A stretch of 64,000 bases of DNA from Lytechinus pictus (taxonomy: Eukaryota): contig NC_087253.1 of the NCBI RefSeq assembly GCF_037042905.1, positions 11,966,001 through 12,030,000 of the forward strand. Direction: 5' to 3'. Position 1 is the first letter of the stretch, and every line of letters starts with the position of its first letter. The position numbers and the translations under genes are program-made. Shown here piece after piece: positions 1,025 through 54,700 of the stretch. A model generated the notes under the pieces. It made no database searches. It had not been told where the DNA came from and saw only the letters and a program-made list of their open reading frames with translations.

Positions 1025-4000
1025 TTAGTCTTTCTTCGATTTTGTGTTTCTTCTTGCGCACAACCGGCAACAGCAGCTGCACACGACCCACCTCACGGTG
1101 AAGATCACTGTCAAGAACACCAACAATAAAAAGACTACAACGTCGATAGATTCTCGCTGGAGAAAGTTAAGTTCTAAAGCTCTGGATCGGAGATGGCCAC
1201 CGCCGAATTTCAAGACGTGTTCGACCCAGTAGACTACCGTCTCTTGAGGCGCGGCAAGTTGATCTTTCATGATTGCGGATGCACGTGCTGCGTTGGTCCG
1301 ATATCTGAAAAGAAAATAAGATGAGGCTGAAAGTGATTATAGGAGTTTTCGAGTTAGGCGATTCAAACATCCTAGCTCACTCATGGTCTGCTCTTGCTGA
1401 TGTGTAAACTGCGCTGAATGGTTTCGGTTCTGGATTTAAAAAAATATATAATGGAGATGACCCAATCACAAAAATGCGTATATATGCAGCTTAAGATATA
1501 ATCGAAGATATGCAAACACAATCCCAACACCTAGACATTTTTGTTCCTGTGCCAACTACCCTCATTCCCAACCCTAGCGGCCAATATGCCGTCGACGTTT
1601 AGGCTTCGGCCCATTTATATTTCCTTTCTCATTTTTATCATAGCCTCTGAAAAGAACTTTTTAAACATATGCTGAATGCTGCATGTGGACTGCCAATTGA
1701 GATTGCCAAGTGTCTATTCACGCGCGAAGCGCGCCGTGAAAAAATCCATCCTCTACCAAAATCTACTTACTATTTATTGGGGCGAAGATGCGTTTGACCA
1801 TCCAAAAGGGAGCTGTCCCCTGCCCCCGGTCTTTTATGGCACCCTCAGCTGTTATTGCTAAATGCCACAGTCATTGAACTTGCGTCGGAAGAAACAAATA
1901 GGCTCTAATTAAAGGAATTCATAATTACTTAGGGTTGGTGAGGATATCGTTGACAGCCTCCCTGAATTCCTCTTCGGTTAAAGTATTCTTATCAACGGCC
2001 CGTCCGAATCCCTTGGTTTCTACTCTGGCTGCATTTCCCATCTGGTCAGCTGCCAGCGGCATGAGGAGGAGAGGGACGCCGTGGGTTGTGGCTTCATAAA
2101 CACCCGCCGCTCCGCCGTGGTAGATCATCATCCTCGCTTTAGGGTGCCCTGTTTTATAAGTTTAATTGTTCGGAGTTGTTATTTCCCCGGCTTGAGAAGT
2201 TATAGTACGCACAGTCTATAACAGTCAAAGCTATCTAAAGAAGATGTTGACGTAGGTCTATAAAAAGGTCTGTAACTCTTTAAGACAAAGCTAATGTGCC
2301 CTACCATGAGGTTTATTTTATTATTTTTCAAATTATCATTATTATTTATACACCACAGGCCCAACGCATATTTTTTTCTTGGGGGCGAGAGGGGTAAACA
2401 TCTTTTAAAAAAATGAAAGTGAAGAAGCGAAGCGAGTACCAACTTGTCATGGGAGCGTTTTGCATTTTCTAAACTGAAATTGAAAGATTTTGTGAACACT
2501 TTTAGTGAATCGTTTATTTTGGTGAATCTTTTGAAAATTTTCAGTAAAGATGATGTAATTTTTTTCACAATTTCGGGGGATCTACCCCCCCCCCCCCGCT
2601 GCGTAGGCCTACGGCCATGCCACAGTAGTGAAACAGTATAATCATTTAAATTAGGGAGAATGAGGATGACAAAATATATTGGAATCAGCTATGTCTTTTG
2701 TCCGATTCCATTCAATTACAAAGTAAAAAAAAAAAAAAAAGTATAATGAATAGTCAACTTTGTCAATCTAATAGCCGATTTTTCCCCCTTCAAGAAATAA
2801 TATCTATTTCCAATATATCTTTAATATAATCAATGATTTATGACGGTGTTAATTTAACACCAGCCTGGTATCTATATCGGTCCACACCAGAGAGGTGCTG
2901 AAGCAACTCCAGTTAAGAATCAAACTGATAATGGTTTAACACTAATTGATGTTGCTTAAAGGTCAAGTCCACCCCAGAAAAAAGTTGATTTAAATAAATA
3001 GAGAAAAATCAAACATGAATAACGCTGAAAACTTCATCAAAATCGGATGTAAAATAAGAAAGTTATGACATTTTAAAGTTCCGCTTATTTTTCACAAAAT
3101 AGTTATATGCTCAACTCAGTGAATGCAAATGAGAGAGTCGATGATGTCACTCACTCACTATTTTTTTTTTTTTTTTATTGTTTGAATTATACAATATTTC
3201 AATTTTTACAAATTTGACAATTAGGACCCCCTTGCTTGAACCACAAAATGTTAAAATAATGGAATTCCATGTGTTCAGGGAGGAATTAAACTTTGTTTCA
3301 CATGACAGTGACGAGAAAATCAAAATATTTCATATTTCATATAATAAAATACAAAAGAAATAGTGAGTGGGTGATGTCATCAGTTCCCTCATTTGCATAC
3401 TGAACAGGGTGTGCATATAACTGTTTTGTGAAATTAAGCGAAACTTTAAAATGTCATAACTTTCTTATTTTACATCCGATTTTGATGAAATTTTCAGTGT
3501 TATGCTTGTTTGATTTTTCTCTTTCTATTCAAATCAGTTTTTTGTTGGGGTGGACTTGTCCTTTAATGCCATATTGGTGTTAGCCTAACGCCAAACCGCT
3601 GGGTTTTTTTTTCAATACCTCTCTGTTGTGGACCGATACAGATTTCAAGCTGGTGTTAATTTAACACCGGCGTTTTTGCAGTGTACCTAGCAAATCATTC
3701 TGTGGTAGCCAATCAGATATGAGTGTATTATTTCCCACGTTGTCAGGTCTTCTTCCTTTATATCGCCACAGCACCCTCTGCGGTAGCTCGCTGAAAACCT
3801 TCGCGATCGATTCGGCCAACCCCTCGTTCTGGAGTGACGTCACAGCCGAACCCTGTAAGGAAGTCAAGTTGAAATTGAACTATTCAAATGGCAAAAAAAA
3901 TTATTTGATATCAATAACAATTTCTTTATATATTGGAGTAAAAAAAAAGAAGAAAACAAAACGATTTGATTTACTTACGTGTTATGGTTTGGGCCTATAC

Positions 4001-7000
4001 TGTCAACTGATCGGGTATGCCACGTCCACCGACAAAAGTTTCTTGGTAAATGAGGCAAATGTGTCGTTTTTACGGTGGAAATATATAAAGCTATGCTTTT
4101 GAAACGACTATAAATCAGGGGCTTGAGAGCTATGTGACTCCATTCCATTAGCATCATGTAGAGCATGCAGAAAACATCCCAAATCAAGAAAAATATCAAT
4201 TTTATTTGTTTATTTTATTTATTTATTTATTCATTGATTTACTTATATGTTTGTTTATTTATTTACCCAGGGTGGGCTCCTTAGAACAAGTGCTTTTGAA
4301 AATAATTAGTGTTGATTCCTTTTGTCGGTGAATTGCAGAATTGTTTATTATTATTTTAAACATAATTAAAAAAAAAAGTATACAACAATATCTAATGTCT
4401 ATTAGGAACATGCCTCTCTCATACTAACCATGCTAATCATTAGATACTTAGCGATAGTGTCTATAGAGTACCGAATCGATGACGTCAGTTGTCATGGTGT
4501 CATGGCGGCCTGATTCTAAACAAATGAACCCGCCGAATGAAAGCGTGTGTTTCTCATAGGAAAAAATGGCTGATATCGGAATTTGATCGCTTGCAACCTA
4601 TTTCACGGACGAACAAAAGTCATTTGCAAATACAAATGTGTATAGACGATCGTCAGATGCGACTCTGTTTAGAACCCGCCCGTCATGACACCATGGCAAC
4701 TGACGTAACACTTCAGTACTCTATTCTACATTCTGAAGAGTTTGATTAATTTAGAATTATGTAGTGTGTATCAAAACAAGCATTACTAACCAGCGTGAAA
4801 ATAATGAATCCATGTTCTCCAGAACCTTCCACGAATTCTTCCAAATTCTGAAACATTAAACAAAACCAGAAGAATCCCTTAGATGTGTTGCCAGATGATT
4901 GTAATAATTCGATTATTGATGATTTTTTTTAAAGGTCCTATCATTAATAAAAAAAATTAAGAAGGCATTCACAGTACGACAATTTGCACAATCGCACTGG
5001 AAGCTATTCTGGTAGGGTCGTAAACAACCCATTACATGGGTTCATCGTTTGGGAAGTGGGTGCTCATGTCATACATTTTCAACTGCGCGAAGCGCCTTTT
5101 TTATGTTAGAATTTCTGGGATACTCGAAAGCGAGGAACAAAGAGATCGAGTTTATCATGATAGCACTTTTGATATTTTCAATTATGAAAATTAAGTCATA
5201 GGTACAAAATTTAGGTAATTTGGTATAATTTTTTACCAAAAAGTGTAGATCCCAAAGCATCACCACCTTCCCCTCTGCCCACTGCCGGCTCTAGTTTCAT
5301 ACGAAGTGTAACTTTTGTAGGGGAGGGGCGCGATCGAACGAAATTCTGGGCGATGTGCAATATTCCATCGGAGATGGTGCTATTTCGTGCATCAACAAAA
5401 TGTAAAATTTAGTGAAATACATGACGTTGCCCTGAAGACACGGAAAGGCGAATAGACGGGATTTAATTCACATTAATTACAAATATGTATTACTTCAATG
5501 TCAAAGTTATACAGCAATCATTATGAAGTTCAACGTACGTGGCAATTGAAAAAAAAATACCTTGGATAATCCGGGCTATGCTGGTTTTGCGGTTATACCC
5601 GGCCCAATACGTATCCAGTTTGGAGCAGTGGGTTGGGCGAAATCCAGTACGAAATTCGAGTAAATTAATGAGAGCTAATTCTACTTGGCCACACACTTGG
5701 CATAAAGGCAAATCTGGACGTATATTAAGCTTTTTAATTTTGATCGATTTTATATGGCGGGTTATGGCGTATTCAAGGAGGCTGTTCACACCGCAAGGGG
5801 GGACCGTGGGCGGACCGTGGATCGCGCTATCGTAGCGCGATCCACGGTCCGCCCATTGGCATTCGCCGGATTCACACCGCAGTGAGATAGCGCGGTCTAT
5901 CGTAGCACCCCCTTTTTTGAGAGGTCCTGTTGCCATGACGCATTACTTACTATATTTCTATTTTCACGATGTTCCGACGCGTTTTACCCCATAAAATTAG
6001 GAGTGTTGAGTTGTACCGATTCAGATTCAGATCGCACCAAAATAGAATGAGTATAAAATTCCCCGCGTGTAGATGACTTCCGGCGTGCTATCGTAGCTCG
6101 GGTTCACACCGGCAGAGATAGCGCGATCTAGCGCGCGCTAGACCGCGCTATCTCTCGTGGACCACCCCCAAGAGGTGCTCCAGTGGCACGCCGTTTTGGC
6201 TCGCCGTGGCTCGCTGTTGGGCGGACCGAAACGACGTTGTACCTTCCACACCGCAGAGATCTCTGCCGGTCTGAACAGGCTCAAGAAGAGAATGTGATGA
6301 AACGTAGGAAATTGTTTTGAAGTTAGTCTTTCCGGAAATGACATCATGTCAGTGGAGGTTGTAAACAGACTGAAGAGAACTTACGAGGACGGGATGGGTA
6401 TTCCAAAGTGATCTTCTGTTACGACGAAAGACCTACGGGATGGGCTGACAACATTGAACGGAACGCCAAATTATTCTGCAAGAAGACAGTCACAACCCAT
6501 AACAGGCAATGTCAAGATCAAGTCAAAGTTTTCCCTCTTTAAGTAATCCAATCATGGGCGGAAATCCCAGGGGGGACAGGGGGGACGTGTCCCCCCTACT
6601 CAAAATAGTAGGGGGGACACAATATCAAATGTCCCCCCTACTATTTCTGGTCTTTTATGATGGTAAGAAATTCATCATTCAAAATCGAAATAAAACATGT
6701 ATTTTAGGACGAGATGACCTTAATTTTTGGATGATAATTAACCTCCTTTTTTTTTTTTTTTTTTTTTGCTTGTCAAATTTATTTTCGTCGAAATGACCTG
6801 AAATTTGGGGTGATAACCTTTTCTTTTTTTTTTGCTTGTCAAATTTTCCAGCCCCTTGTCCCCCCTACCTTTTGGGAGAGATTTCCGCCCATGAATCCAA
6901 TGTTTCCTGGTCTTTAAACCGTGAGGTAATACAGCCTTCGGATCAAAACTGTAGCCTTTCAGATACCTTATGGACTTTCTCAAGGACTGTTAGTCTTTTG

Positions 7001-9613
7001 TCATTCATGAGAAGGGTAACGACTCCGTTTTCGACTTCTAGATCCTCTCTGGGACGTGAGCTCTGGAAGAAGATGCGATACGTTACTGCTTCTGATGATA
7101 TCCCTTTGATGATCTTGTTCTCAGGTGCAAGGAGGACGACCTGGGGAGCGTTTCATGAAAGGACTTGTCGGACGTTTTATCCGACAAGTCCCACTTTATC
7201 CGACAGTTACCAAAGTAACAGTGCTTCTTAGCCAATCAGAATCAAGGAAAGATGTCAGATCTGACAACTTGTCGGACGGAAATGTTGATGAAACACTCCC
7301 CTGGTGTCGTTTTGCTACGAGAGGTTCAGCCACAGAAGACATCATCACATGTCTGTTCGTAGGGGTGTAGAATGTGGTCATGGCGAGCAAGATCTTTGCT
7401 CCACCGACTTGCCATCAGAGGGAACACCAAAACTACAAGCACGACAAGCGGTGTTAATGATTTTCCCAACCGGGCCATCACTCCGATATGGCAGCAATGT
7501 AGTCGCGTTATTTTAACCAAAACATAGGCCTACTGTATGGGATTTCGCCGGGCCATATAAATATAAGATATTTATACATGACTCTGATTAGGATTATCAG
7601 GGACGATAAATAAATAGATATACTTAGACCAATTATTATTATTGGAGCGTTGTGGCACAATGGATTAGTCTTCTGACTTTGAAACAGGGGGCCGTGGGTT
7701 CGAATCCCAGCCAAGGCGTAATTTCATTCAGCCAGAATTTGTCCACATTGTGCTGCACTCAATCCAGGTTAGGTGAATGGGTACCCGGCAGGATTAATTC
7801 CTTGAAGGTACTGAGCGCTGAAAGGCAGCTCGAGCTAAAGCCGGGGTAATAAGATAATGATAAACAATGCGCCTCGGAATAGATTATTTCTAGATAGATG
7901 GCGCTATATAAATGCCTATTATCATTATATCATTATTATTATTATGTAAACACACAAGTAATGATTGTTGACCCACAACATTTAAAGAGAGCAATGAGCA
8001 CAAACGGGCGCGCTACAGCGAGTGGTGGGGGGTCAGGGGTGACTGCCCACGAGTCTGTATCAAGAAGTGGGAAAAAAAGAATTAGAATAGATGAAGCAAA
8101 AGAGGAAGAAAATTGAAGAAAGAAATAGGAAGAGCATTTAATAAGAGAGGTATAATTTGTGTTAACTCTATCCTGTTATCGAAATTAGAAAAAAAAAAAC
8201 AGATCGCCCCTACCCCTTCCATGAAAATACACTGGCATGAGAGCAATGGAAAGATTTCAAAGTTCATTTCCCGTGTTAATGGTCTTACGGAAGGCGGATT
8301 TGGATCGTTGCTAATGCTGATCTAAGTTACGAACGACTTTACATACGCCATGTACGTGACTGGCTCTTTGGTGCCACCTGAGAATCTCAGTCATCATTTA
8401 AATTCCCTACAGTTAATTTTAATTTCGATCTTTGCCTATTAAAAGTAGTGTTTTAAAATTTGACGAGGGCAATAATGGTAATATAAGTAGCTACTTCGTC
8501 ATACCACTACATTAAAACAAGAAAGTTTTGCGCATATCAAACATAGCATTTCCCAGTCGTTAGTATGCGTTAGGTTGTGCTTAATGATCCCCATCCTGAT
8601 TGTGAAACTATTAAGTATATCGTTACTTTCGAAAATAAGAAAGAAAGGGAAGATTAATCAAACTTAATACTCTCATTATGGCATTGCCACATAACTCCCC
8701 TACCAAGATGCATGACACGCCCCACGTTGCTTACATTAGTGAGTGGCTGAGAAGGCTTAGCCGTGATGCCACCAATGGGTATCCAGTTGGGTGCCAGGGG
8801 CTGAGGGTAGTCCAAGGCGAAACTTAAATAAACGAACGCCAACTCTGCCCGACCCATAAGCTGACGCAGGGTAAGATCTGGACGGATGTTCATTTGTTTC
8901 TTGATTTCCCTTAATCGGTAAGTAGTGATGAACTCTATCAGGGGCTGGGCGACGAAGCGGATGAGAATGTTCTGAAGGCGGTCTTTGAAGGGCATTCTAT
9001 CGGATTGTGTGAAGGAGGAGATGATGCTGAATGGAACGTAGGACGAAGGGACTGGAATTCCAAAGTGATCTTCAGTGACGACCAACGATCTTCTTGCTGG
9101 GCTAATCAAAATGAAAGGGATTTTAAGGTATTCCGCCAGAAGGGCATCACAACCCACAATAGGCATGGTGAGAATCAGATCAAAGTTCGCCTTCTTGAGG
9201 CTGTCCAAGGTTGCATGGTCTTCGAAGAGGTTGGAACATCCTTCTCCAAGCAGATGTAAATGCTGCCTGAAGAGCTGGAAGACTGCGATGGGATTGCTCT
9301 GGCTGAGTCGATGTTGCACTCCTGTGAGATTGTTCATGAACTCCTCGTGTTCTGCCTTGGTCCTGGAGCTTTCGAAGAAGATCTTGTCGGTAACAGCTCC
9401 AGAGGACAAGCCTTTTGTTATTTTGTTTTTAGGGGCGAGCAGAACTACCTGGTGACCTGCTTCAACCAGAGGTTCTGTGACAGCGGACATGACGATGTGT
9501 TGACTTGGAGTATTGATAACAGAAGACATTGCACATAGAATTTTTGCTCCCAAAGAAGGTGACATGGAAGCAACCAAGCTAACCATCAACATTAAACCTC
9601 GTTGGATATTCAT
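1025..9613 (-). CDS. UDP-glucuronosyltransferase (animal UGT, GT1 family), 5 coding exons, ~533 aa
   Basis: Exons (minus): 9613-8735, 4847-4791, 3852-3687, 2148-1929, 1304-1025. All introns are GT-AG and phases (0,0,1,2) join into one 1602-nt frame. Protein has a signal peptide (MNIQRGLMLMVSLVASMSPSLGAKIL), the UGT signature [48 protein letters not shown], the VYWVEHVL motif, a C-terminal TM helix and a KSKKD dilysine ER-retrieval tail. Confidence 0.93.
2960..3562. mobile_element. Kolobok-like (TTAA TSD) non-autonomous DNA transposon
   Basis: TTAA|AGGTCAAGTCCACCCC...GGGGTGGACTTGTCCT|TTAA with long internal inverted repeats; nested in an older GGTGTTAATTTAACACC-bounded element (~2845-3680). 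Confidence 0.85.
5778..6282. mobile_element. Harbinger-like MITE in the UGT pseudo-exon
   Basis: TIR GAGGCTGTTCACACCG...CGGTCTGAACAGGCTC; 3-bp TSD AAG. Removing it restores HSLLEYAITRH, colinear with QPLIEFITTYR of intact exon 1. Confidence 0.78.
6553..6893. mobile_element. hAT-type MITE in the UGT pseudo-exon
   Basis: TIR CATGGGCGGAAATC...GATTTCCGCCCATG; perfect 8-bp TSD AATCCAAT (6545-6552 / 6894-6901). Confidence 0.9.
7144..7300. mobile_element. PIF/Harbinger-type MITE (GGGAGCGTTTCAT family), CTG TSD
   Basis: TIR GGGAGCGTTTCAT...ATGAAACACTCCC flanked by CTG on both sides; it interrupts the ...KRH|QVVLL... codons of the pseudo-exon. Relatives at 53010-53147, 53151-53307, ~35173-35315, ~27280-27415 and ~44868-44995. 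Confidence 0.85.
7644..7945 (+). mobile_element. tRNA-derived SINE with a Deu-domain-like core
   Basis: Head with A box TGGCACAATGG, TTG anticodon-like loop and B box GGTTCGAATCC; core CACTCAATCCAGG...AATGGGTACC; L2-like tail GCGCTATATAAATGC followed by (ATT)n. Confidence 0.85.
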
Positions 9614-10113
9614 GGTTTCACGTGTATATGTTTTCAGCAGTTATCATAAGCATTCCATCTTCACCCGATCATTGGGTTCCCGATATAGGATTAATAGGCG
9701 AGATAGAGGACCCTAAAGGGCAGACTCCTGATGTAGACTTAATAAACCCTCATTTTTTTTCTGAACACGAGAAATAGCACGTAGCCTATTTAGTTTCCAG
9801 GCGGAGATGGTGATGATGTACAAATCACAGAAAGAATATACGATTAAAAAATGTATAAGTACAAAGTTCAAGTCGGTGTAAACGTCAACATTTTGCTTAG
9901 CACGAGGGCAAATCTGTTCGATATCATGTTTCCGTAGCCGTAGGCCTATGATCTGATATGGCAAGGTCCGATCTGTTTTTTTTTAGCGAACTTTGACTCG
10001 AATCAATATAAGGATGTGTGTTTACACTATACAGTTTCCTGTAAGCGATGCAGATGACCTAAATCTGAACAGCGAGTTTCAATCTGATGATAAACACAAT
10101 AGCAGATCAAGGG

Positions 10114-41124: not shown

Positions 41125-41622
41125 NNNNNNNNNNNNNNNNNNNNNNNNNNNNNNNNNNNNNNNNNNNNNNNNNNNNNNNNNNNNNNNNNNNNNNNNNNNN
41201 NNNNNNNNNNNNNNNNNNNNNNNNNNNNNNNNNNNNNNNNNNNNNNNNNNNNNNNNNNNNNNNNNNNNNNNNNNNNNNNNNNNNNNNNNNNNNNNNNNNN
41301 NNNNNNNNNNNNNNNNNNNNNNNNNNNNNNNNNNNNNNNNNNNNNNNNNNNNNNNNNNNNNNNNNNNNNNNNNNNNNNNNNNNNNNNNNNNNNNNNNNNN
41401 NNNNNNNNNNNNNNNNNNNNNNNNNNNNNNNNNNNNNNNNNNNNNNNNNNNNNNNNNNNNNNNNNNNNNNNNNNNNNNNNNNNNNNNNNNNNNNNNNNNN
41501 NNNNNNNNNNNNNNNNNNNNNNNNNNNNNNNNNNNNNNNNNNNNNNNNNNNNNNNNNNNNNNNNNNNNNNNNNNNNNNNNNNNNNNNNNNNNNNNNNNNN
41601 NNNNNNNNNNNNNNNNNNNNNN
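41125..41622. other. Assembly gap (N run)
   Basis: Run of N bases. Confidence 1.
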
Positions 41623-42065: not shown

Positions 42066-42550
42066 NNNNNNNNNNNNNNNNNNNNNNNNNNNNNNNNNNN
42101 NNNNNNNNNNNNNNNNNNNNNNNNNNNNNNNNNNNNNNNNNNNNNNNNNNNNNNNNNNNNNNNNNNNNNNNNNNNNNNNNNNNNNNNNNNNNNNNNNNNN
42201 NNNNNNNNNNNNNNNNNNNNNNNNNNNNNNNNNNNNNNNNNNNNNNNNNNNNNNNNNNNNNNNNNNNNNNNNNNNNNNNNNNNNNNNNNNNNNNNNNNNN
42301 NNNNNNNNNNNNNNNNNNNNNNNNNNNNNNNNNNNNNNNNNNNNNNNNNNNNNNNNNNNNNNNNNNNNNNNNNNNNNNNNNNNNNNNNNNNNNNNNNNNN
42401 NNNNNNNNNNNNNNNNNNNNNNNNNNNNNNNNNNNNNNNNNNNNNNNNNNNNNNNNNNNNNNNNNNNNNNNNNNNNNNNNNNNNNNNNNNNNNNNNNNNN
42501 NNNNNNNNNNNNNNNNNNNNNNNNNNNNNNNNNNNNNNNNNNNNNNNNNN
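42066..42550. other. Assembly gap (N run)
   Basis: Run of N bases. Confidence 1.
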
Positions 42551-51700: not shown

Positions 51701-54700
51701 CTGGCAAACCTATAGAATAAAAAGAAAATTAAATAAGGGTTGTAAATATCAGTGCTTACATGTACAAGGAGAACATGACATAGAGCCTTCTACAGGCAAA
51801 TGCATTTCCGTGCTTATTCTTGAACATTTAGACTCTTGCATTTGGAACATGATGAATATCATCAATATTATTCATCATACTACCACTGTCAGGTATTTAT
51901 ATATTTACATATATATTATTCTGGGGGGGGGGGGCAGGGGGGTCAAATATGAAAAGAAAAATAATAGTGGGTACTAGGTTTAGGGACAGTGATTTTCCGT
52001 TTCTAAAAATTGCCTTTTCCGTTTCAGAAAATCTCGAATTCCGGTTCAGCATGTCTGAAAACGGAAATTCTGTTTCCCCATAGACTCTGTGTACGTATGA
52101 AAAAGTGACAATTCCGTTTACATAGAAAACCAATACGCAATGAGTAGCGCGATGTCAAAATGCTAGCGTTGGTCAAAATTTGCATCTACCAATGTGCTAA
52201 CATCGCTTTAAAATCCATTTTAATCGAAGAGTTTCGAGCTCAAAAACTATTTAGAGAAACATAATCAACATTAATACATCCTCACCTTTCATATTATTAG
52301 CATTATTTTATGGTTACATGGGATTTTATTGCTGATTTGGGGACTTTTCGGACATCGTTTTGAGCAGTCAACAACTTCTGCCTATCCGCCATTTTGGATT
52401 TGTTGAATCACCGTGATGTATTATGACCGAACACAGAGGGCAGCAACACACGGCCGTATTCTGTCTTACATGCGGACGTCAGTGTAAACTAATTTAGATA
52501 CGATCGAGTGATGGTGGGGCTCGAGTGTAGTTACGATGTGTTGATTGTTGTTGCAAAGTGAGATCGTGTTTTTTTCAGTTGATATTCGTATTTTGTTGAG
52601 GATTTGGGATTAATTTCTGTTGATATTTTGTGCATTTTGAGAAAAAACAAGTTTTCCTTGATTTTCCGTTTGAAAAGCCACTTTCCGTTTCAAAAGGCCG
52701 ATTCCGTGAATTCCGTCCGTTTTCCGCGATCGCGGAAAATCACTGTCCGTATAGGTTTCACTAGGGCCTGTAAGATTAACCAATGAAAGTTTGTTTCTTA
52801 TAACAGAAAGGAGAGGGTTGGTTGATATGAAAGCTCTTTGAGTTTTCGATCTGTTTTTCTTGTCAAAACAAAACTCCTCACACATACGTGTGGGGTGGTA
52901 TATGTACATGCCCACAATAATCGAAGGGAGTTCGAAGGTTTCTCAGAAATGAGTGTCCTCTGCTTACAGTATGGACAATGTTCCATTATCCAGTCTTCAA
53001 GAAGCTCTGGGGAGTATTTTATAAACATTTCTGTCCAACGAGCTGTCAGATCTGGCAACTTTCCTTGCTTTTGATTGGCTGAGAAGCACTGTTACTATGG
53101 TAACTGTCGGATAAAATGTCCGACAAGTCCTTTCATGAAATGCTCCCCTGGGGAGCGTTTCATCAACATTTTCGTCCGACAAGTTGTCAGATCTGACAAC
53201 TTTCCTTGATACTGATTGGCTGTGAGGCACTGTTACTATGGTAACTGTCGGATAAAACAGGTCTAGTCGGATAAAATTTCTGACAAGTCCAGTCATGAAA
53301 CGCTCCCCTGGTCTTTAAAAACTTTTTTGTTTGAAAAGAGCATGATAAAAATCAGTGTAGATCGGTATATTTCCTTCTTACCTTTTATTTATTTATTCTT
53401 TTTTTTTGGGGGGGGGGTCACATCTGAATAAACAGGTTTCAGTCAAGTCCGGTCAGATTACGGCAAACGGACCATATTCTTGGACTTACCTTTGAAATTC
53501 TCACAGAATGTTCCAGTCCAGTAGAGATCACAATGGCACACATAACTGCTTCCTAGCCTCTGAAAGGTACCTCCATTTTTACAAAGCACACTCTTGCAGG
53601 AAATATGGGCTGCAAGATAACAATGGGTACAAGTGCATATTTTAACATACCTTGAACATACCTTGAAGTGCTACACTTCCATCTTCAGGTAGATAGATAT
53701 TAGTGTGGCATGGTTTGAGGGGGCTTTGTAGCCCATTAATAACCCAATTTTTAATATATAATGTAGAGGGAATTTTTTAAGTTATGATAACATTAAAACA
53801 ATTTCACCTTGCTGAAAATTTCAATGTTGATATCACAACATGGTCAAAGCTCATTGACCCTAAATGACCTTTCACCTTGATCATGTGACCTGAAACTTGC
53901 CCAAAATGATCAGTGATACGTGATTGCCCTTTTGCCCAAGTTCCATAAAATAGATCCATTTATTTTCAGTTATCATAACATTTCAAAAACTTAACCCTGG
54001 TTAAGATTTCAATGTCGATACCCCCAACATGGTAAAGTTCATTGCCCATAAATGACCTTTGACATGGGCCATTTACATTAGGATCAGTGGTACTTGATTG
54101 CCATTATGTCCAAGTTTCATAGGTCTGTATACTTTCTAAGTTATGAAAACATTTCAAAAACTTAACCTTGGTCAAGATAATGATGACAATGCTGCCGCTG
54201 TCAGAAAAGCGGCACTGACTATTGTCTCGCTCTGCTATGCGGGTGAAACAGATAATGCTTGTTTGGGGGATGGAAGGGTAGTGGAAGGGGTGACCTAGGC
54301 AGGGGCCTGCTTGGTCCCTTGGATATACCCCCAAATATCAAACTCACCTTGAGTGCAGCGGCATGATGCCTCTCTTGTTTGTTTATCCCTGATGCATGCT
54401 TCAAAGCTAAAACAATCACCATCGATCGTGCAGTTAGATCCAACAGGTAAAGCTGCTAAAATGTTAAAAGAGAAAATTATTTCATTAGTTTTATTTTCTT
54501 CATTTCATCAAAATTCAAATGATGTTTTGTTTAAAATCCATGTATACACACTCTTGGTAAACATGTATATGCACTTGTTTCTTTTAAAAAAATAAGTTTT
54601 CAAAATCATAATTTTTCAAATCCATTTGATAACAAATCCAAAGTTTTTTTACCTCAAATAGCCTTTGGCCTTGACTTGAACTGAACACGACTTAAAAATG

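Follow-up and report, generated by a model that had tools for sequence, protein, structure and literature searches.

We describe a UDP-glucuronosyltransferase (UGT) locus of the sea urchin Lytechinus pictus in which one intact and one decayed first exon stand in tandem ahead of a single set of constant exons. The locus lies in a stretch of 64,000 nucleotides (NCBI RefSeq assembly GCF_037042905.1, contig NC_087253.1, positions 11,966,001 to 12,030,000 of the forward strand), hereafter the window. The sharing of constant exons behind variable first exons is the textbook vertebrate route to cheap diversity, in detoxification enzymes as in protocadherins, and an original prediction, made from the letters of the window alone, had proposed a strategy of this kind, resembling that of vertebrate UGT1A, for the urchin locus. 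Our analysis leads us to read it, with a probability of about 0.6, as a former UGT1A-like locus with two variable exons that is now an ordinary single-isoform gene carrying a decayed exon in its intron 1. The tandem first exons, the single constant set and an identical layout in Lytechinus variegatus bear out the proposed architecture; the joining of the second first exon to the constant exons, which the strategy entails, finds no counterpart in RNA.

All features of the locus lie on the minus strand, and coordinates refer to the window. Exon 1A (9613-8735) is intact, comprising 879 nt or 293 codons from its ATG to a phase 0 donor (GTAAGC at 8734), and codes for a signal peptide and the N-terminal, aglycone-binding half of a UGT. 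The constant part consists of exon 2 (4847-4791, 57 nt) and exon 3 (3852-3687, 166 nt, conserved in L. variegatus), both with AG/GT borders, exon 4 (2148-1929, 220 nt), which carries the UDP-sugar binding signature, and exon 5 (1304-1025, 280 nt, then stop), which encodes a transmembrane helix and the basic tail KSKKD. Exons 1A and 2-5 join into one open reading frame (ORF) of 533 aa, every intron being bounded by GT..AG. The Pfam profile UDPGT (PF00201) is matched over both halves, by exon 1A (E=3e-35, profile positions 11-262), exon 4 (E=6e-20, positions 338-409) and exon 5 (E=2.4e-16, positions 411-498), which assigns the product to the animal UGTs resident in the endoplasmic reticulum (ER; UDPGT, GT1 fold), and the nearest named proteins to 1A in the protein database are urchin UDP-glucuronosyltransferases. 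Read directly from the protein, the 533-aa model has a hydrophobic, signal-like start, a hydrophobic stretch of ~17 residues near the C-terminus and the tail KSKKD; this putative signal peptide, membrane helix and KXKXX-type tail fit ER-resident animal UGTs. A tblastn search with the constant part found a single set, 4847-1025, in the whole 64-kb window and no copy of exons 2-5 between 1A and the second first exon, in agreement with the original prediction. The public L. pictus model P0001 (469 aa, in the nr protein database) runs about 10 codons past the 1A donor and continues with exon 4, skipping exons 2 and 3, unlike our 533-aa model and the L. variegatus protein P0002, which agree with each other. 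NCBI proteins assigned to L. pictus match the window, and other loci of its assembly, at 99-100 % identity. Runs of N occupy 41125-41622 and 42066-42550 of the window.

Four RNA runs were compared with the locus, two as Logan contigs (X1 and X19) and two as raw reads (X21 and X22, ~6 % of each). A contig of 1986 nt from X1 covers 9728-8736 without differences and leaves the stretch exactly at the 1A donor (8735/8736); its remaining 993 nt correspond to the length of exons 2-5 plus a trailer of ~270 nt. Coverage of the unique intron parts by X1 is zero, so that its contigs behave as mature mRNA. A contig from X19 joins 8735 to 4847 across GT..AG ends. The 5' untranslated leader of the 1A transcript occupies at least 9614-9811, being covered to 9728 by the X1 contig and to 9811 by the X19 contig. 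Neither X21 nor X22 contains reads on 1A or on the repeat-free parts of the second first exon, their matches being confined to repeats, and the gene is silent or rare in these samples. Of the two junctions foreseen for the locus, the one from 8735 to 4847 is thus present in RNA, while a joint from 5561, the donor of the second first exon, occurs in none of the four runs. Exon 1A is spliced to exon 2, and the present locus is a single-isoform gene.

The second first exon, pseudo-exon 1B, is a dead paralogue of 1A that spans 7478-5561, from an ATG at 7478 to a GT at 5560-5559. Searching the window with the 1A peptide by tblastn reveals a second collinear copy as four blocks within 7402-5573, at 44-62 % identity and with E-values down to 7e-26, which places its likeness to 1A far beyond chance. 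A frameshift-aware alignment of 1A and 1B is collinear over codons 1-293, with 54 % amino-acid identity in 280 aligned codons. The end of 1B (...CCAAG/GTATTT at 5561/5560) falls on the site homologous to the 1A donor (...ACTAAT/GTAAGC), and the exon-1 donor at this place is in phase 0 across the UGT family. The same searches support the original description of 1A as intact and of 1B as a diverged paralogue with its own start and an equivalent donor. The ends proposed for 1B were likewise correct, although much of the 1.9 kb between them consists of three transposons, leaving coding remnants at 7478-7302, 7142-6894, 6552-6281 and 5781-5561. Besides these insertions, 1B carries about 8 stops or frameshifts in L. 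pictus: frameshifts near 7403, 6292 and 5672, stops at 6945, 6473, 6383 and 5578, and a 4-nt insertion at 6326 that creates a TAA. Only ~1 kb separates the 1A donor from the start of 1B.

The three transposons interrupt 1B at codons 55, 135 and 222. The first (TE1, 7301-7143, 159 nt, with inverted ends) has further copies in the window at 53150-53308 (89 %) and 53009-53148 and at another locus (L028, 91 %), and its read depth in the RNA runs is at repeat level. The second (TE2, 6893-6553, 341 nt) has terminal inverted repeats CATGGGCGGAAATC and sits between the two copies of an 8-bp target duplication, ATTGGATT (6901-6894 and 6552-6545); among 3558 candidates in the genome, at least 40 are full-length copies at 86-93 % identity. 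The third (TE3, about 6280-5782, ~480-500 nt) has inverted ends and is flanked by an imperfect direct duplication of ~8 bp, CTTCTTGA and CTCCTTGA. Its family counts more than 30 genome copies, with 99-100 % identity over 479 nt and scattered across many chromosomes, so that the family is very young and the insertion in 1B very recent; TE3 has the look of a non-autonomous DNA transposon that was active in L. pictus until very recently. None of the three is present at the matching sites in L. variegatus. Just upstream of 1B lies a high-copy repeat (7993-7633), at a place where L. pictus has 437 nt against 116 nt in L. variegatus, which lacks the repeat there; its part 7806-7633 matches two other places in the L. 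variegatus locus (L031), and contig depth here is in the thousands. A short interspersed element derived from a tRNA was suspected at this place, but ARAGORN found no tRNA there. Many raw RNA reads from the two runs fall on the repeats at 7114-7289, 6410-6937 and 7642-7993, on both strands; their many differences from the window indicate that they derive from other copies.

The orthologous locus of L. variegatus (L031, on CM031023.1) is collinear with the window and encodes a protein 98 % identical to that of L. pictus (P0002). Exon 1A is followed ~1 kb downstream by 1B (L031:11873-12756) and then by a lone constant set; in L031, too, the interval from 1A to 1B is free of constant exons. Exon 1A has been conserved at 96.4 % nucleotide identity between the species, with a ratio of nonsynonymous to synonymous divergence (dN/dS) of 0.08. 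As was to be expected under the proposed architecture, the L. variegatus 1B lacks exons 2-5 of its own, yet it is also broken. It has at least 8 lesions, at other places than in L. pictus: a stop at codon 5, frameshifts near codons 36, 41, 52, 137, 154, 180 and 244, and a 13-nt deletion before the donor. A comparison of these with the about 8 lesions of the L. pictus copy found none that is clearly common to both species, and the GT at the old 1B donor has been kept in both. Pseudo-exon 1B, which had been taken for dead in this haplotype, is indeed dead, not in one haplotype only but throughout the species, and in L. variegatus too.

Codon positions record when 1B ceased to be constrained. Between L. 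pictus and L. variegatus, mismatches at codon positions 1, 2 and 3 amount to 1.7 %, 1.0 % and 8.2 % in 1A and to 13.5 %, 13.8 % and 16.6 % in 1B, the latter at or above the ~11 % found in introns. Since its divergence is even across the three codon positions and lies near that of introns, 1B has drifted for about the whole time since the species split. Between 1A and 1B themselves, the corresponding values are 39 %, 27 % and 60-66 %, with a saturated proportion of synonymous differences (pS 0.83-0.85) and a dN of 0.36-0.45. Because of this saturation (pS ~0.84) a dN/dS for the stem between 1A and 1B is not obtainable, and codon-position divergence and tree branch lengths were used instead. The strongly codon-structured divergence between 1A and 1B implies that 1B was not neutral from the time of duplication, a history that the original prediction had named as one that would speak against it. 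In the protein tree, the path from the duplication to the ancestor of both 1B copies measures 0.49 and the matching 1A path 0.43; after the species split, the 1B branches measure 0.13 and 0.28, against 0.01-0.04 for 1A. Taken together, 1B was under purifying selection for most of its history, with constraint lost near the split of L. pictus and L. variegatus. With no lesions in common, one silent event shortly before the split and two events shortly after it both fit.

The duplication itself is considerably older. In trees of echinoid sequences only, 1B groups with the 1A lineage, as its sister, and not with the neighbouring paralogues. The urchin transcript P0003 (522 aa, put together from three RNA runs) clusters with 1A and leaves 1B outside, and a tree forcing Lytechinus 1A and 1B together without P0003 is rejected by the approximately unbiased (AU) test (p=0.0075), from which it follows that the duplication of 1A and 1B is older than the P0003 lineage. 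In the constant part, Lytechinus and P0003 are 0.215 apart, a distance that stands to that of exon 1A in a ratio of 0.63-0.65, mid-range for the family. This normal ratio of constant to N-terminal distance indicates that the constant exons share the history of 1A and have not been taken recently from a separate gene B; a recent takeover predicts a constant-part distance two to three times larger. A genome search with a 65-aa piece of 1B found no relative closer to it than 1A, its best matches being 1A and three neighbours on C9, at 36-66 % identity and over partial lengths.

These observations can be assembled into the following history. The ancestral locus would have held two alternative first exons, 1A and 1B, each with its own signal peptide and aglycone-binding domain, ahead of shared exons 2-5 for the UDP-sugar-binding domain, membrane anchor and ER-retention tail. 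Exon 1B would have been born by an old local duplication of exon 1, before at least one further urchin lineage branched off, and was kept by purifying selection for most of its life; with only the shared constant exons available to it, it would have been transcribed from its own start and spliced to exon 2, in the manner of vertebrate UGT1A. Near the divergence of L. pictus and L. variegatus the constraint on 1B was lost, and each species then went through a separate decay, by stops, frameshifts and three transposons, one of them very recent, in L. pictus. Transcripts now begin upstream of 1A, and splicing from the 1A donor to exon 2 removes a 3.9-kb intron with the dead 1B inside it. From before the P0003 split until about the species split, 1B was under selection while lying between 1A and constant exons with the history of 1A, a situation that sharing of the exons explains most simply. 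Gene conversion, or a nested gene since lost, could mimic it.

Several observations weigh against this history. No RNA joins 1B to exon 2 in the four runs, although none is expected with 1B dead. The candidate TATA box of 1B, TATAAATA, which the original prediction had put forward, is present two bases from where it had been placed (7576-7569), but it lies inside ~42 nt without an L. variegatus counterpart; such a non-conserved motif gives no evidence for a 1B promoter. The interspecies dN/dS of 1B is 0.66 (0.47-0.91) and not 1, a value biased downwards by the placement of codons according to similarity to 1A. The frameshift in the signal-peptide region could be shared, both copies being out of frame there through 1-nt and 4-nt indels that differ, and whether it is shared or separate cannot be polarised without an outgroup. 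A smaller tree leaves the position of 1B relative to the clades of Diadema and of a set of European Nucleotide Archive (ENA) proteins ambiguous, and among the database proteins sharing words with 1A there is neither a species with a live 1B nor a protein that groups with 1B. Lastly, in the outgroup Diadema the related locus holds plain genes and complete genes in tandem, which implies that, as far as seen, exon sharing is not ancestral to the whole subfamily; it probably arose within echinoids, judging from these sequences.

The most substantial alternative starts from whole genes. If two complete genes had stood in tandem, a deletion just before the species split could have removed the upstream constant exons, and perhaps the 1B promoter, whereupon 1A would have taken over the downstream set and 1B would have died without the two ever having shared exons. 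A single deletion of this kind fits both the loss of constraint at about the species split without shared lesions and the mere ~1 kb between the 1A donor and the start of 1B, and Diadema antillarum does carry complete genes in tandem at the related place. On this view the constant exons that survived would be those of gene B, and they should lie about as far from P0003 as the duplication is old; the observed distance of 0.215 and its orthologue-like ratio of 0.63-0.65 contradict this, unless gene conversion between the two constant sets has masked the signal. As the AU test places the duplication before the P0003 split, moving the deletion to an early enough date would still leave a long period of sharing. 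We consider such a relic of tandem genes unlikely, albeit deserving of serious attention.

Two further explanations do without a deletion. An exon-1-only fragment of a separate, working UGT may have been copied into intron 1 shortly before the species split and have been dead on arrival, its parent being lost later. The long constraint, acting on the parent, and the neutrality since the split would both follow without any sharing, at the price of an extra gene loss. Yet no parent exists in the genome, where the 65-aa piece of 1B meets only 1A and the three C9 neighbours (36-66 %), nor is there a 1B-type protein among the database proteins sharing words with 1A, and the orientation, ATG, full length and homologous donor have all been kept, as in a local tandem duplication; we regard this origin as quite improbable. 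Alternatively, the remnant may still have a role, for instance as a non-coding regulatory element or an alternative non-coding leader. The retention of GT at the old donor in both species would agree with such a role, as would the low, even coverage by X19 over parts of intron 1, which could equally be DNA or unspliced RNA. The interspecies divergence of 1B, flat over codon positions and at or above intron level, is difficult to reconcile with it, as are the three transposon insertions and many indels. Junctions from 5561 are absent, X1 coverage is zero on the repeat-free parts 6938-7113 and 7466-7641, and the raw-read runs are at zero on all repeat-free parts of 1B. A residual function is accordingly the least credible of the explanations, and hardly to be expected. 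We therefore retain the reading of 1B as a formerly shared, now decayed variable exon.

A search of the whole assembly for loci with multiple first exons, using exon 1A, exon 4 and exon 5 as queries, a check that the original prediction had proposed, returned several loci in which many first exons precede a constant set. At C14:14406424-14430448, ten near-identical first exons on the same strand, with a period of 2.57 kb, precede one exon 4 (14402260). The whole array (L014-L023, 14393672-14430448) includes two exon-5 matches, at 14400813 and 14393672, and one copy (L020) has a TAA stop; the pieces fetched from the array all exceed one period in length and show no constant exon from one first-exon copy to the next. 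At C11:19908559-19925425, five to seven first exons, some of them broken, precede a single set of three constant exons (L043-L045, to 19929045), and a protein database search with the proximal first exon gave only that one L. pictus protein. The first exons of both arrays belong to other UGT subfamilies, being 25-33 % identical to 1A over exon 1, with donor position and phase in common. The layout of one constant set per first-exon array is confirmed for C14 and C11 at the level of genomic sequence.

By coordinates alone, two to four exon-1 matches precede a single exon-4/exon-5 match at C3:79716980-79738617, C2:36491784-36522445, C20:10997922-11061571 and C20:12451610-12457803. Some 60-80 kb from the window, C9 holds a partial first exon (11884324-11885058; L034, L004) that is 74 % identical to the neighbouring gene and cut at codon 245; its last part lies 6.4 kb further (11891412-11891654), apparently fused to exon-2 sequence, and no constant exons belonging to this copy occur ahead of the next complete UGT gene (11903590).

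Among other urchins, Diadema setosum has a plain gene at a related syntenic place, adjoining a ubiquitin-conjugating enzyme gene as in L. variegatus, and in Diadema antillarum the related locus holds two complete genes in tandem. The neighbouring gene (Pfam UQ_con) lies at L031:1-1631 in L. variegatus and at L032:24028-25269 in Diadema setosum; its presence in both supports synteny of the UGT locus across distant urchins, and its orientation relative to the UGT gene differs between the two. An ENA contig of 18,324 bp (sample ERZ26222911) contains at least four ORFs on the same strand, of 295-325 aa (P0004-P0007), which match only the N-terminal UGT half; they are spaced at 3-5 kb, and no ORF for a C-terminal UGT half intervenes. 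As this layout is known from ORFs alone, it is a lead only. The proteins of this contig and those of Diadema form a sister clade of the 1A/1B group. Protein pairs from S. purpuratus, L. pictus and Diadema were considered as isoforms with shared constant halves and were rejected as such, their C-terminal parts differing too, which makes them separate genes.

The locus is an urchin example of a layout already known from vertebrate UGT1A and Ugt2. It has tandem first exons on the same strand, each with its own ATG and signal peptide (degraded in 1B), homologous donors and one constant set; what it lacks today is function as an isoform-generating system, which takes at least two functional isoforms, 1B being disabled by its ~8 stops and frameshifts and its three transposons. 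As in vertebrate UGT1A, the first exon supplies the signal peptide together with the entire aglycone-binding half, its tandem copies end at the same donor place and phase, and four downstream exons encode the UDP-sugar-binding half, membrane anchor and basic tail. Exon 4 of human UGT1A also measures 220 nt, and the borders of exons 3/4 and 4/5 fall at the same motifs as in the urchin locus, whereas exons 2 and 3 measure 132 and 88 nt in human against 57 and 166 nt in the urchin. The urchin locus differs in its echinoderm host and in having two first exons, of which one is alive, so that it provides no isoform diversity today; and separate promoter use and splicing of 1B are conjectured from its history.

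The birth and death of variable exons, with lineage-specific frameshifts, is a further trait in common. Vertebrate UGT1A includes dead variable exons, such as human UGT1A2P, 11P, 12P and 13P (PMC1885805, PMC3325998), and dead variable exons are known in both UGT1 and UGT2 clusters (PMC1885805, PMC2819257), where a frameshift or insertion kills the exon and deaths can be species-specific (PMC1885805, PMC2819257, PMC3325998). Zebrafish Ugt2a/Ugt2b and mammalian UGT2A1/2A2 combine a few variable first exons with shared constant exons, include the frame-shifted Ugt2b2 and Ugt2b4, and in zebrafish each live variable exon has been cloned as a cDNA joined to the constant exons (PMC2819257). The urchin locus resembles these Ugt2 loci in being a small cluster in which some variable exons have been lost to insertions and frameshifts and the remainder of the locus goes on being used, and in being adjoined by complete single genes of the same subfamily, here L002 and L003 on C9; it differs from the zebrafish loci in that joining of a first exon to the constant exons is seen only for 1A. 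With the C14 and C11 arrays it shares the UGT family, the donor position and phase and one downstream constant set with none between copies. The first exons of those arrays are mostly intact; the locus in the window is the smallest and is decayed, yet it is datable against a sister species. A full-text literature search, limited to the library searched, found no paper describing a shared-constant-exon arrangement of UGT genes outside vertebrates.

By itself this is a modest finding, which gains its interest through the dating of its past and through the larger arrays elsewhere in the genome. Annotators can take from it why a 3.9-kb intron is full of UGT-like sequence, and that no second gene should be called at this place. 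Its value lies in the evidence that a first exon lacking its own constant exons was long maintained by selection, which is indirect but datable support for working exon sharing in an echinoderm. We see an even chance that sea urchins evolved a shared-constant-exon UGT design apart from vertebrates, with birth and death of first exons, and that 1B is a datable death within it, having worked from before the split of a further lineage until about the divergence of the two species. Together with the larger arrays, the locus suggests that the old UGT gene structure of deuterostomes, in which a single large first exon covers the whole substrate-binding half, may have been prone to giving rise to this design more than once.

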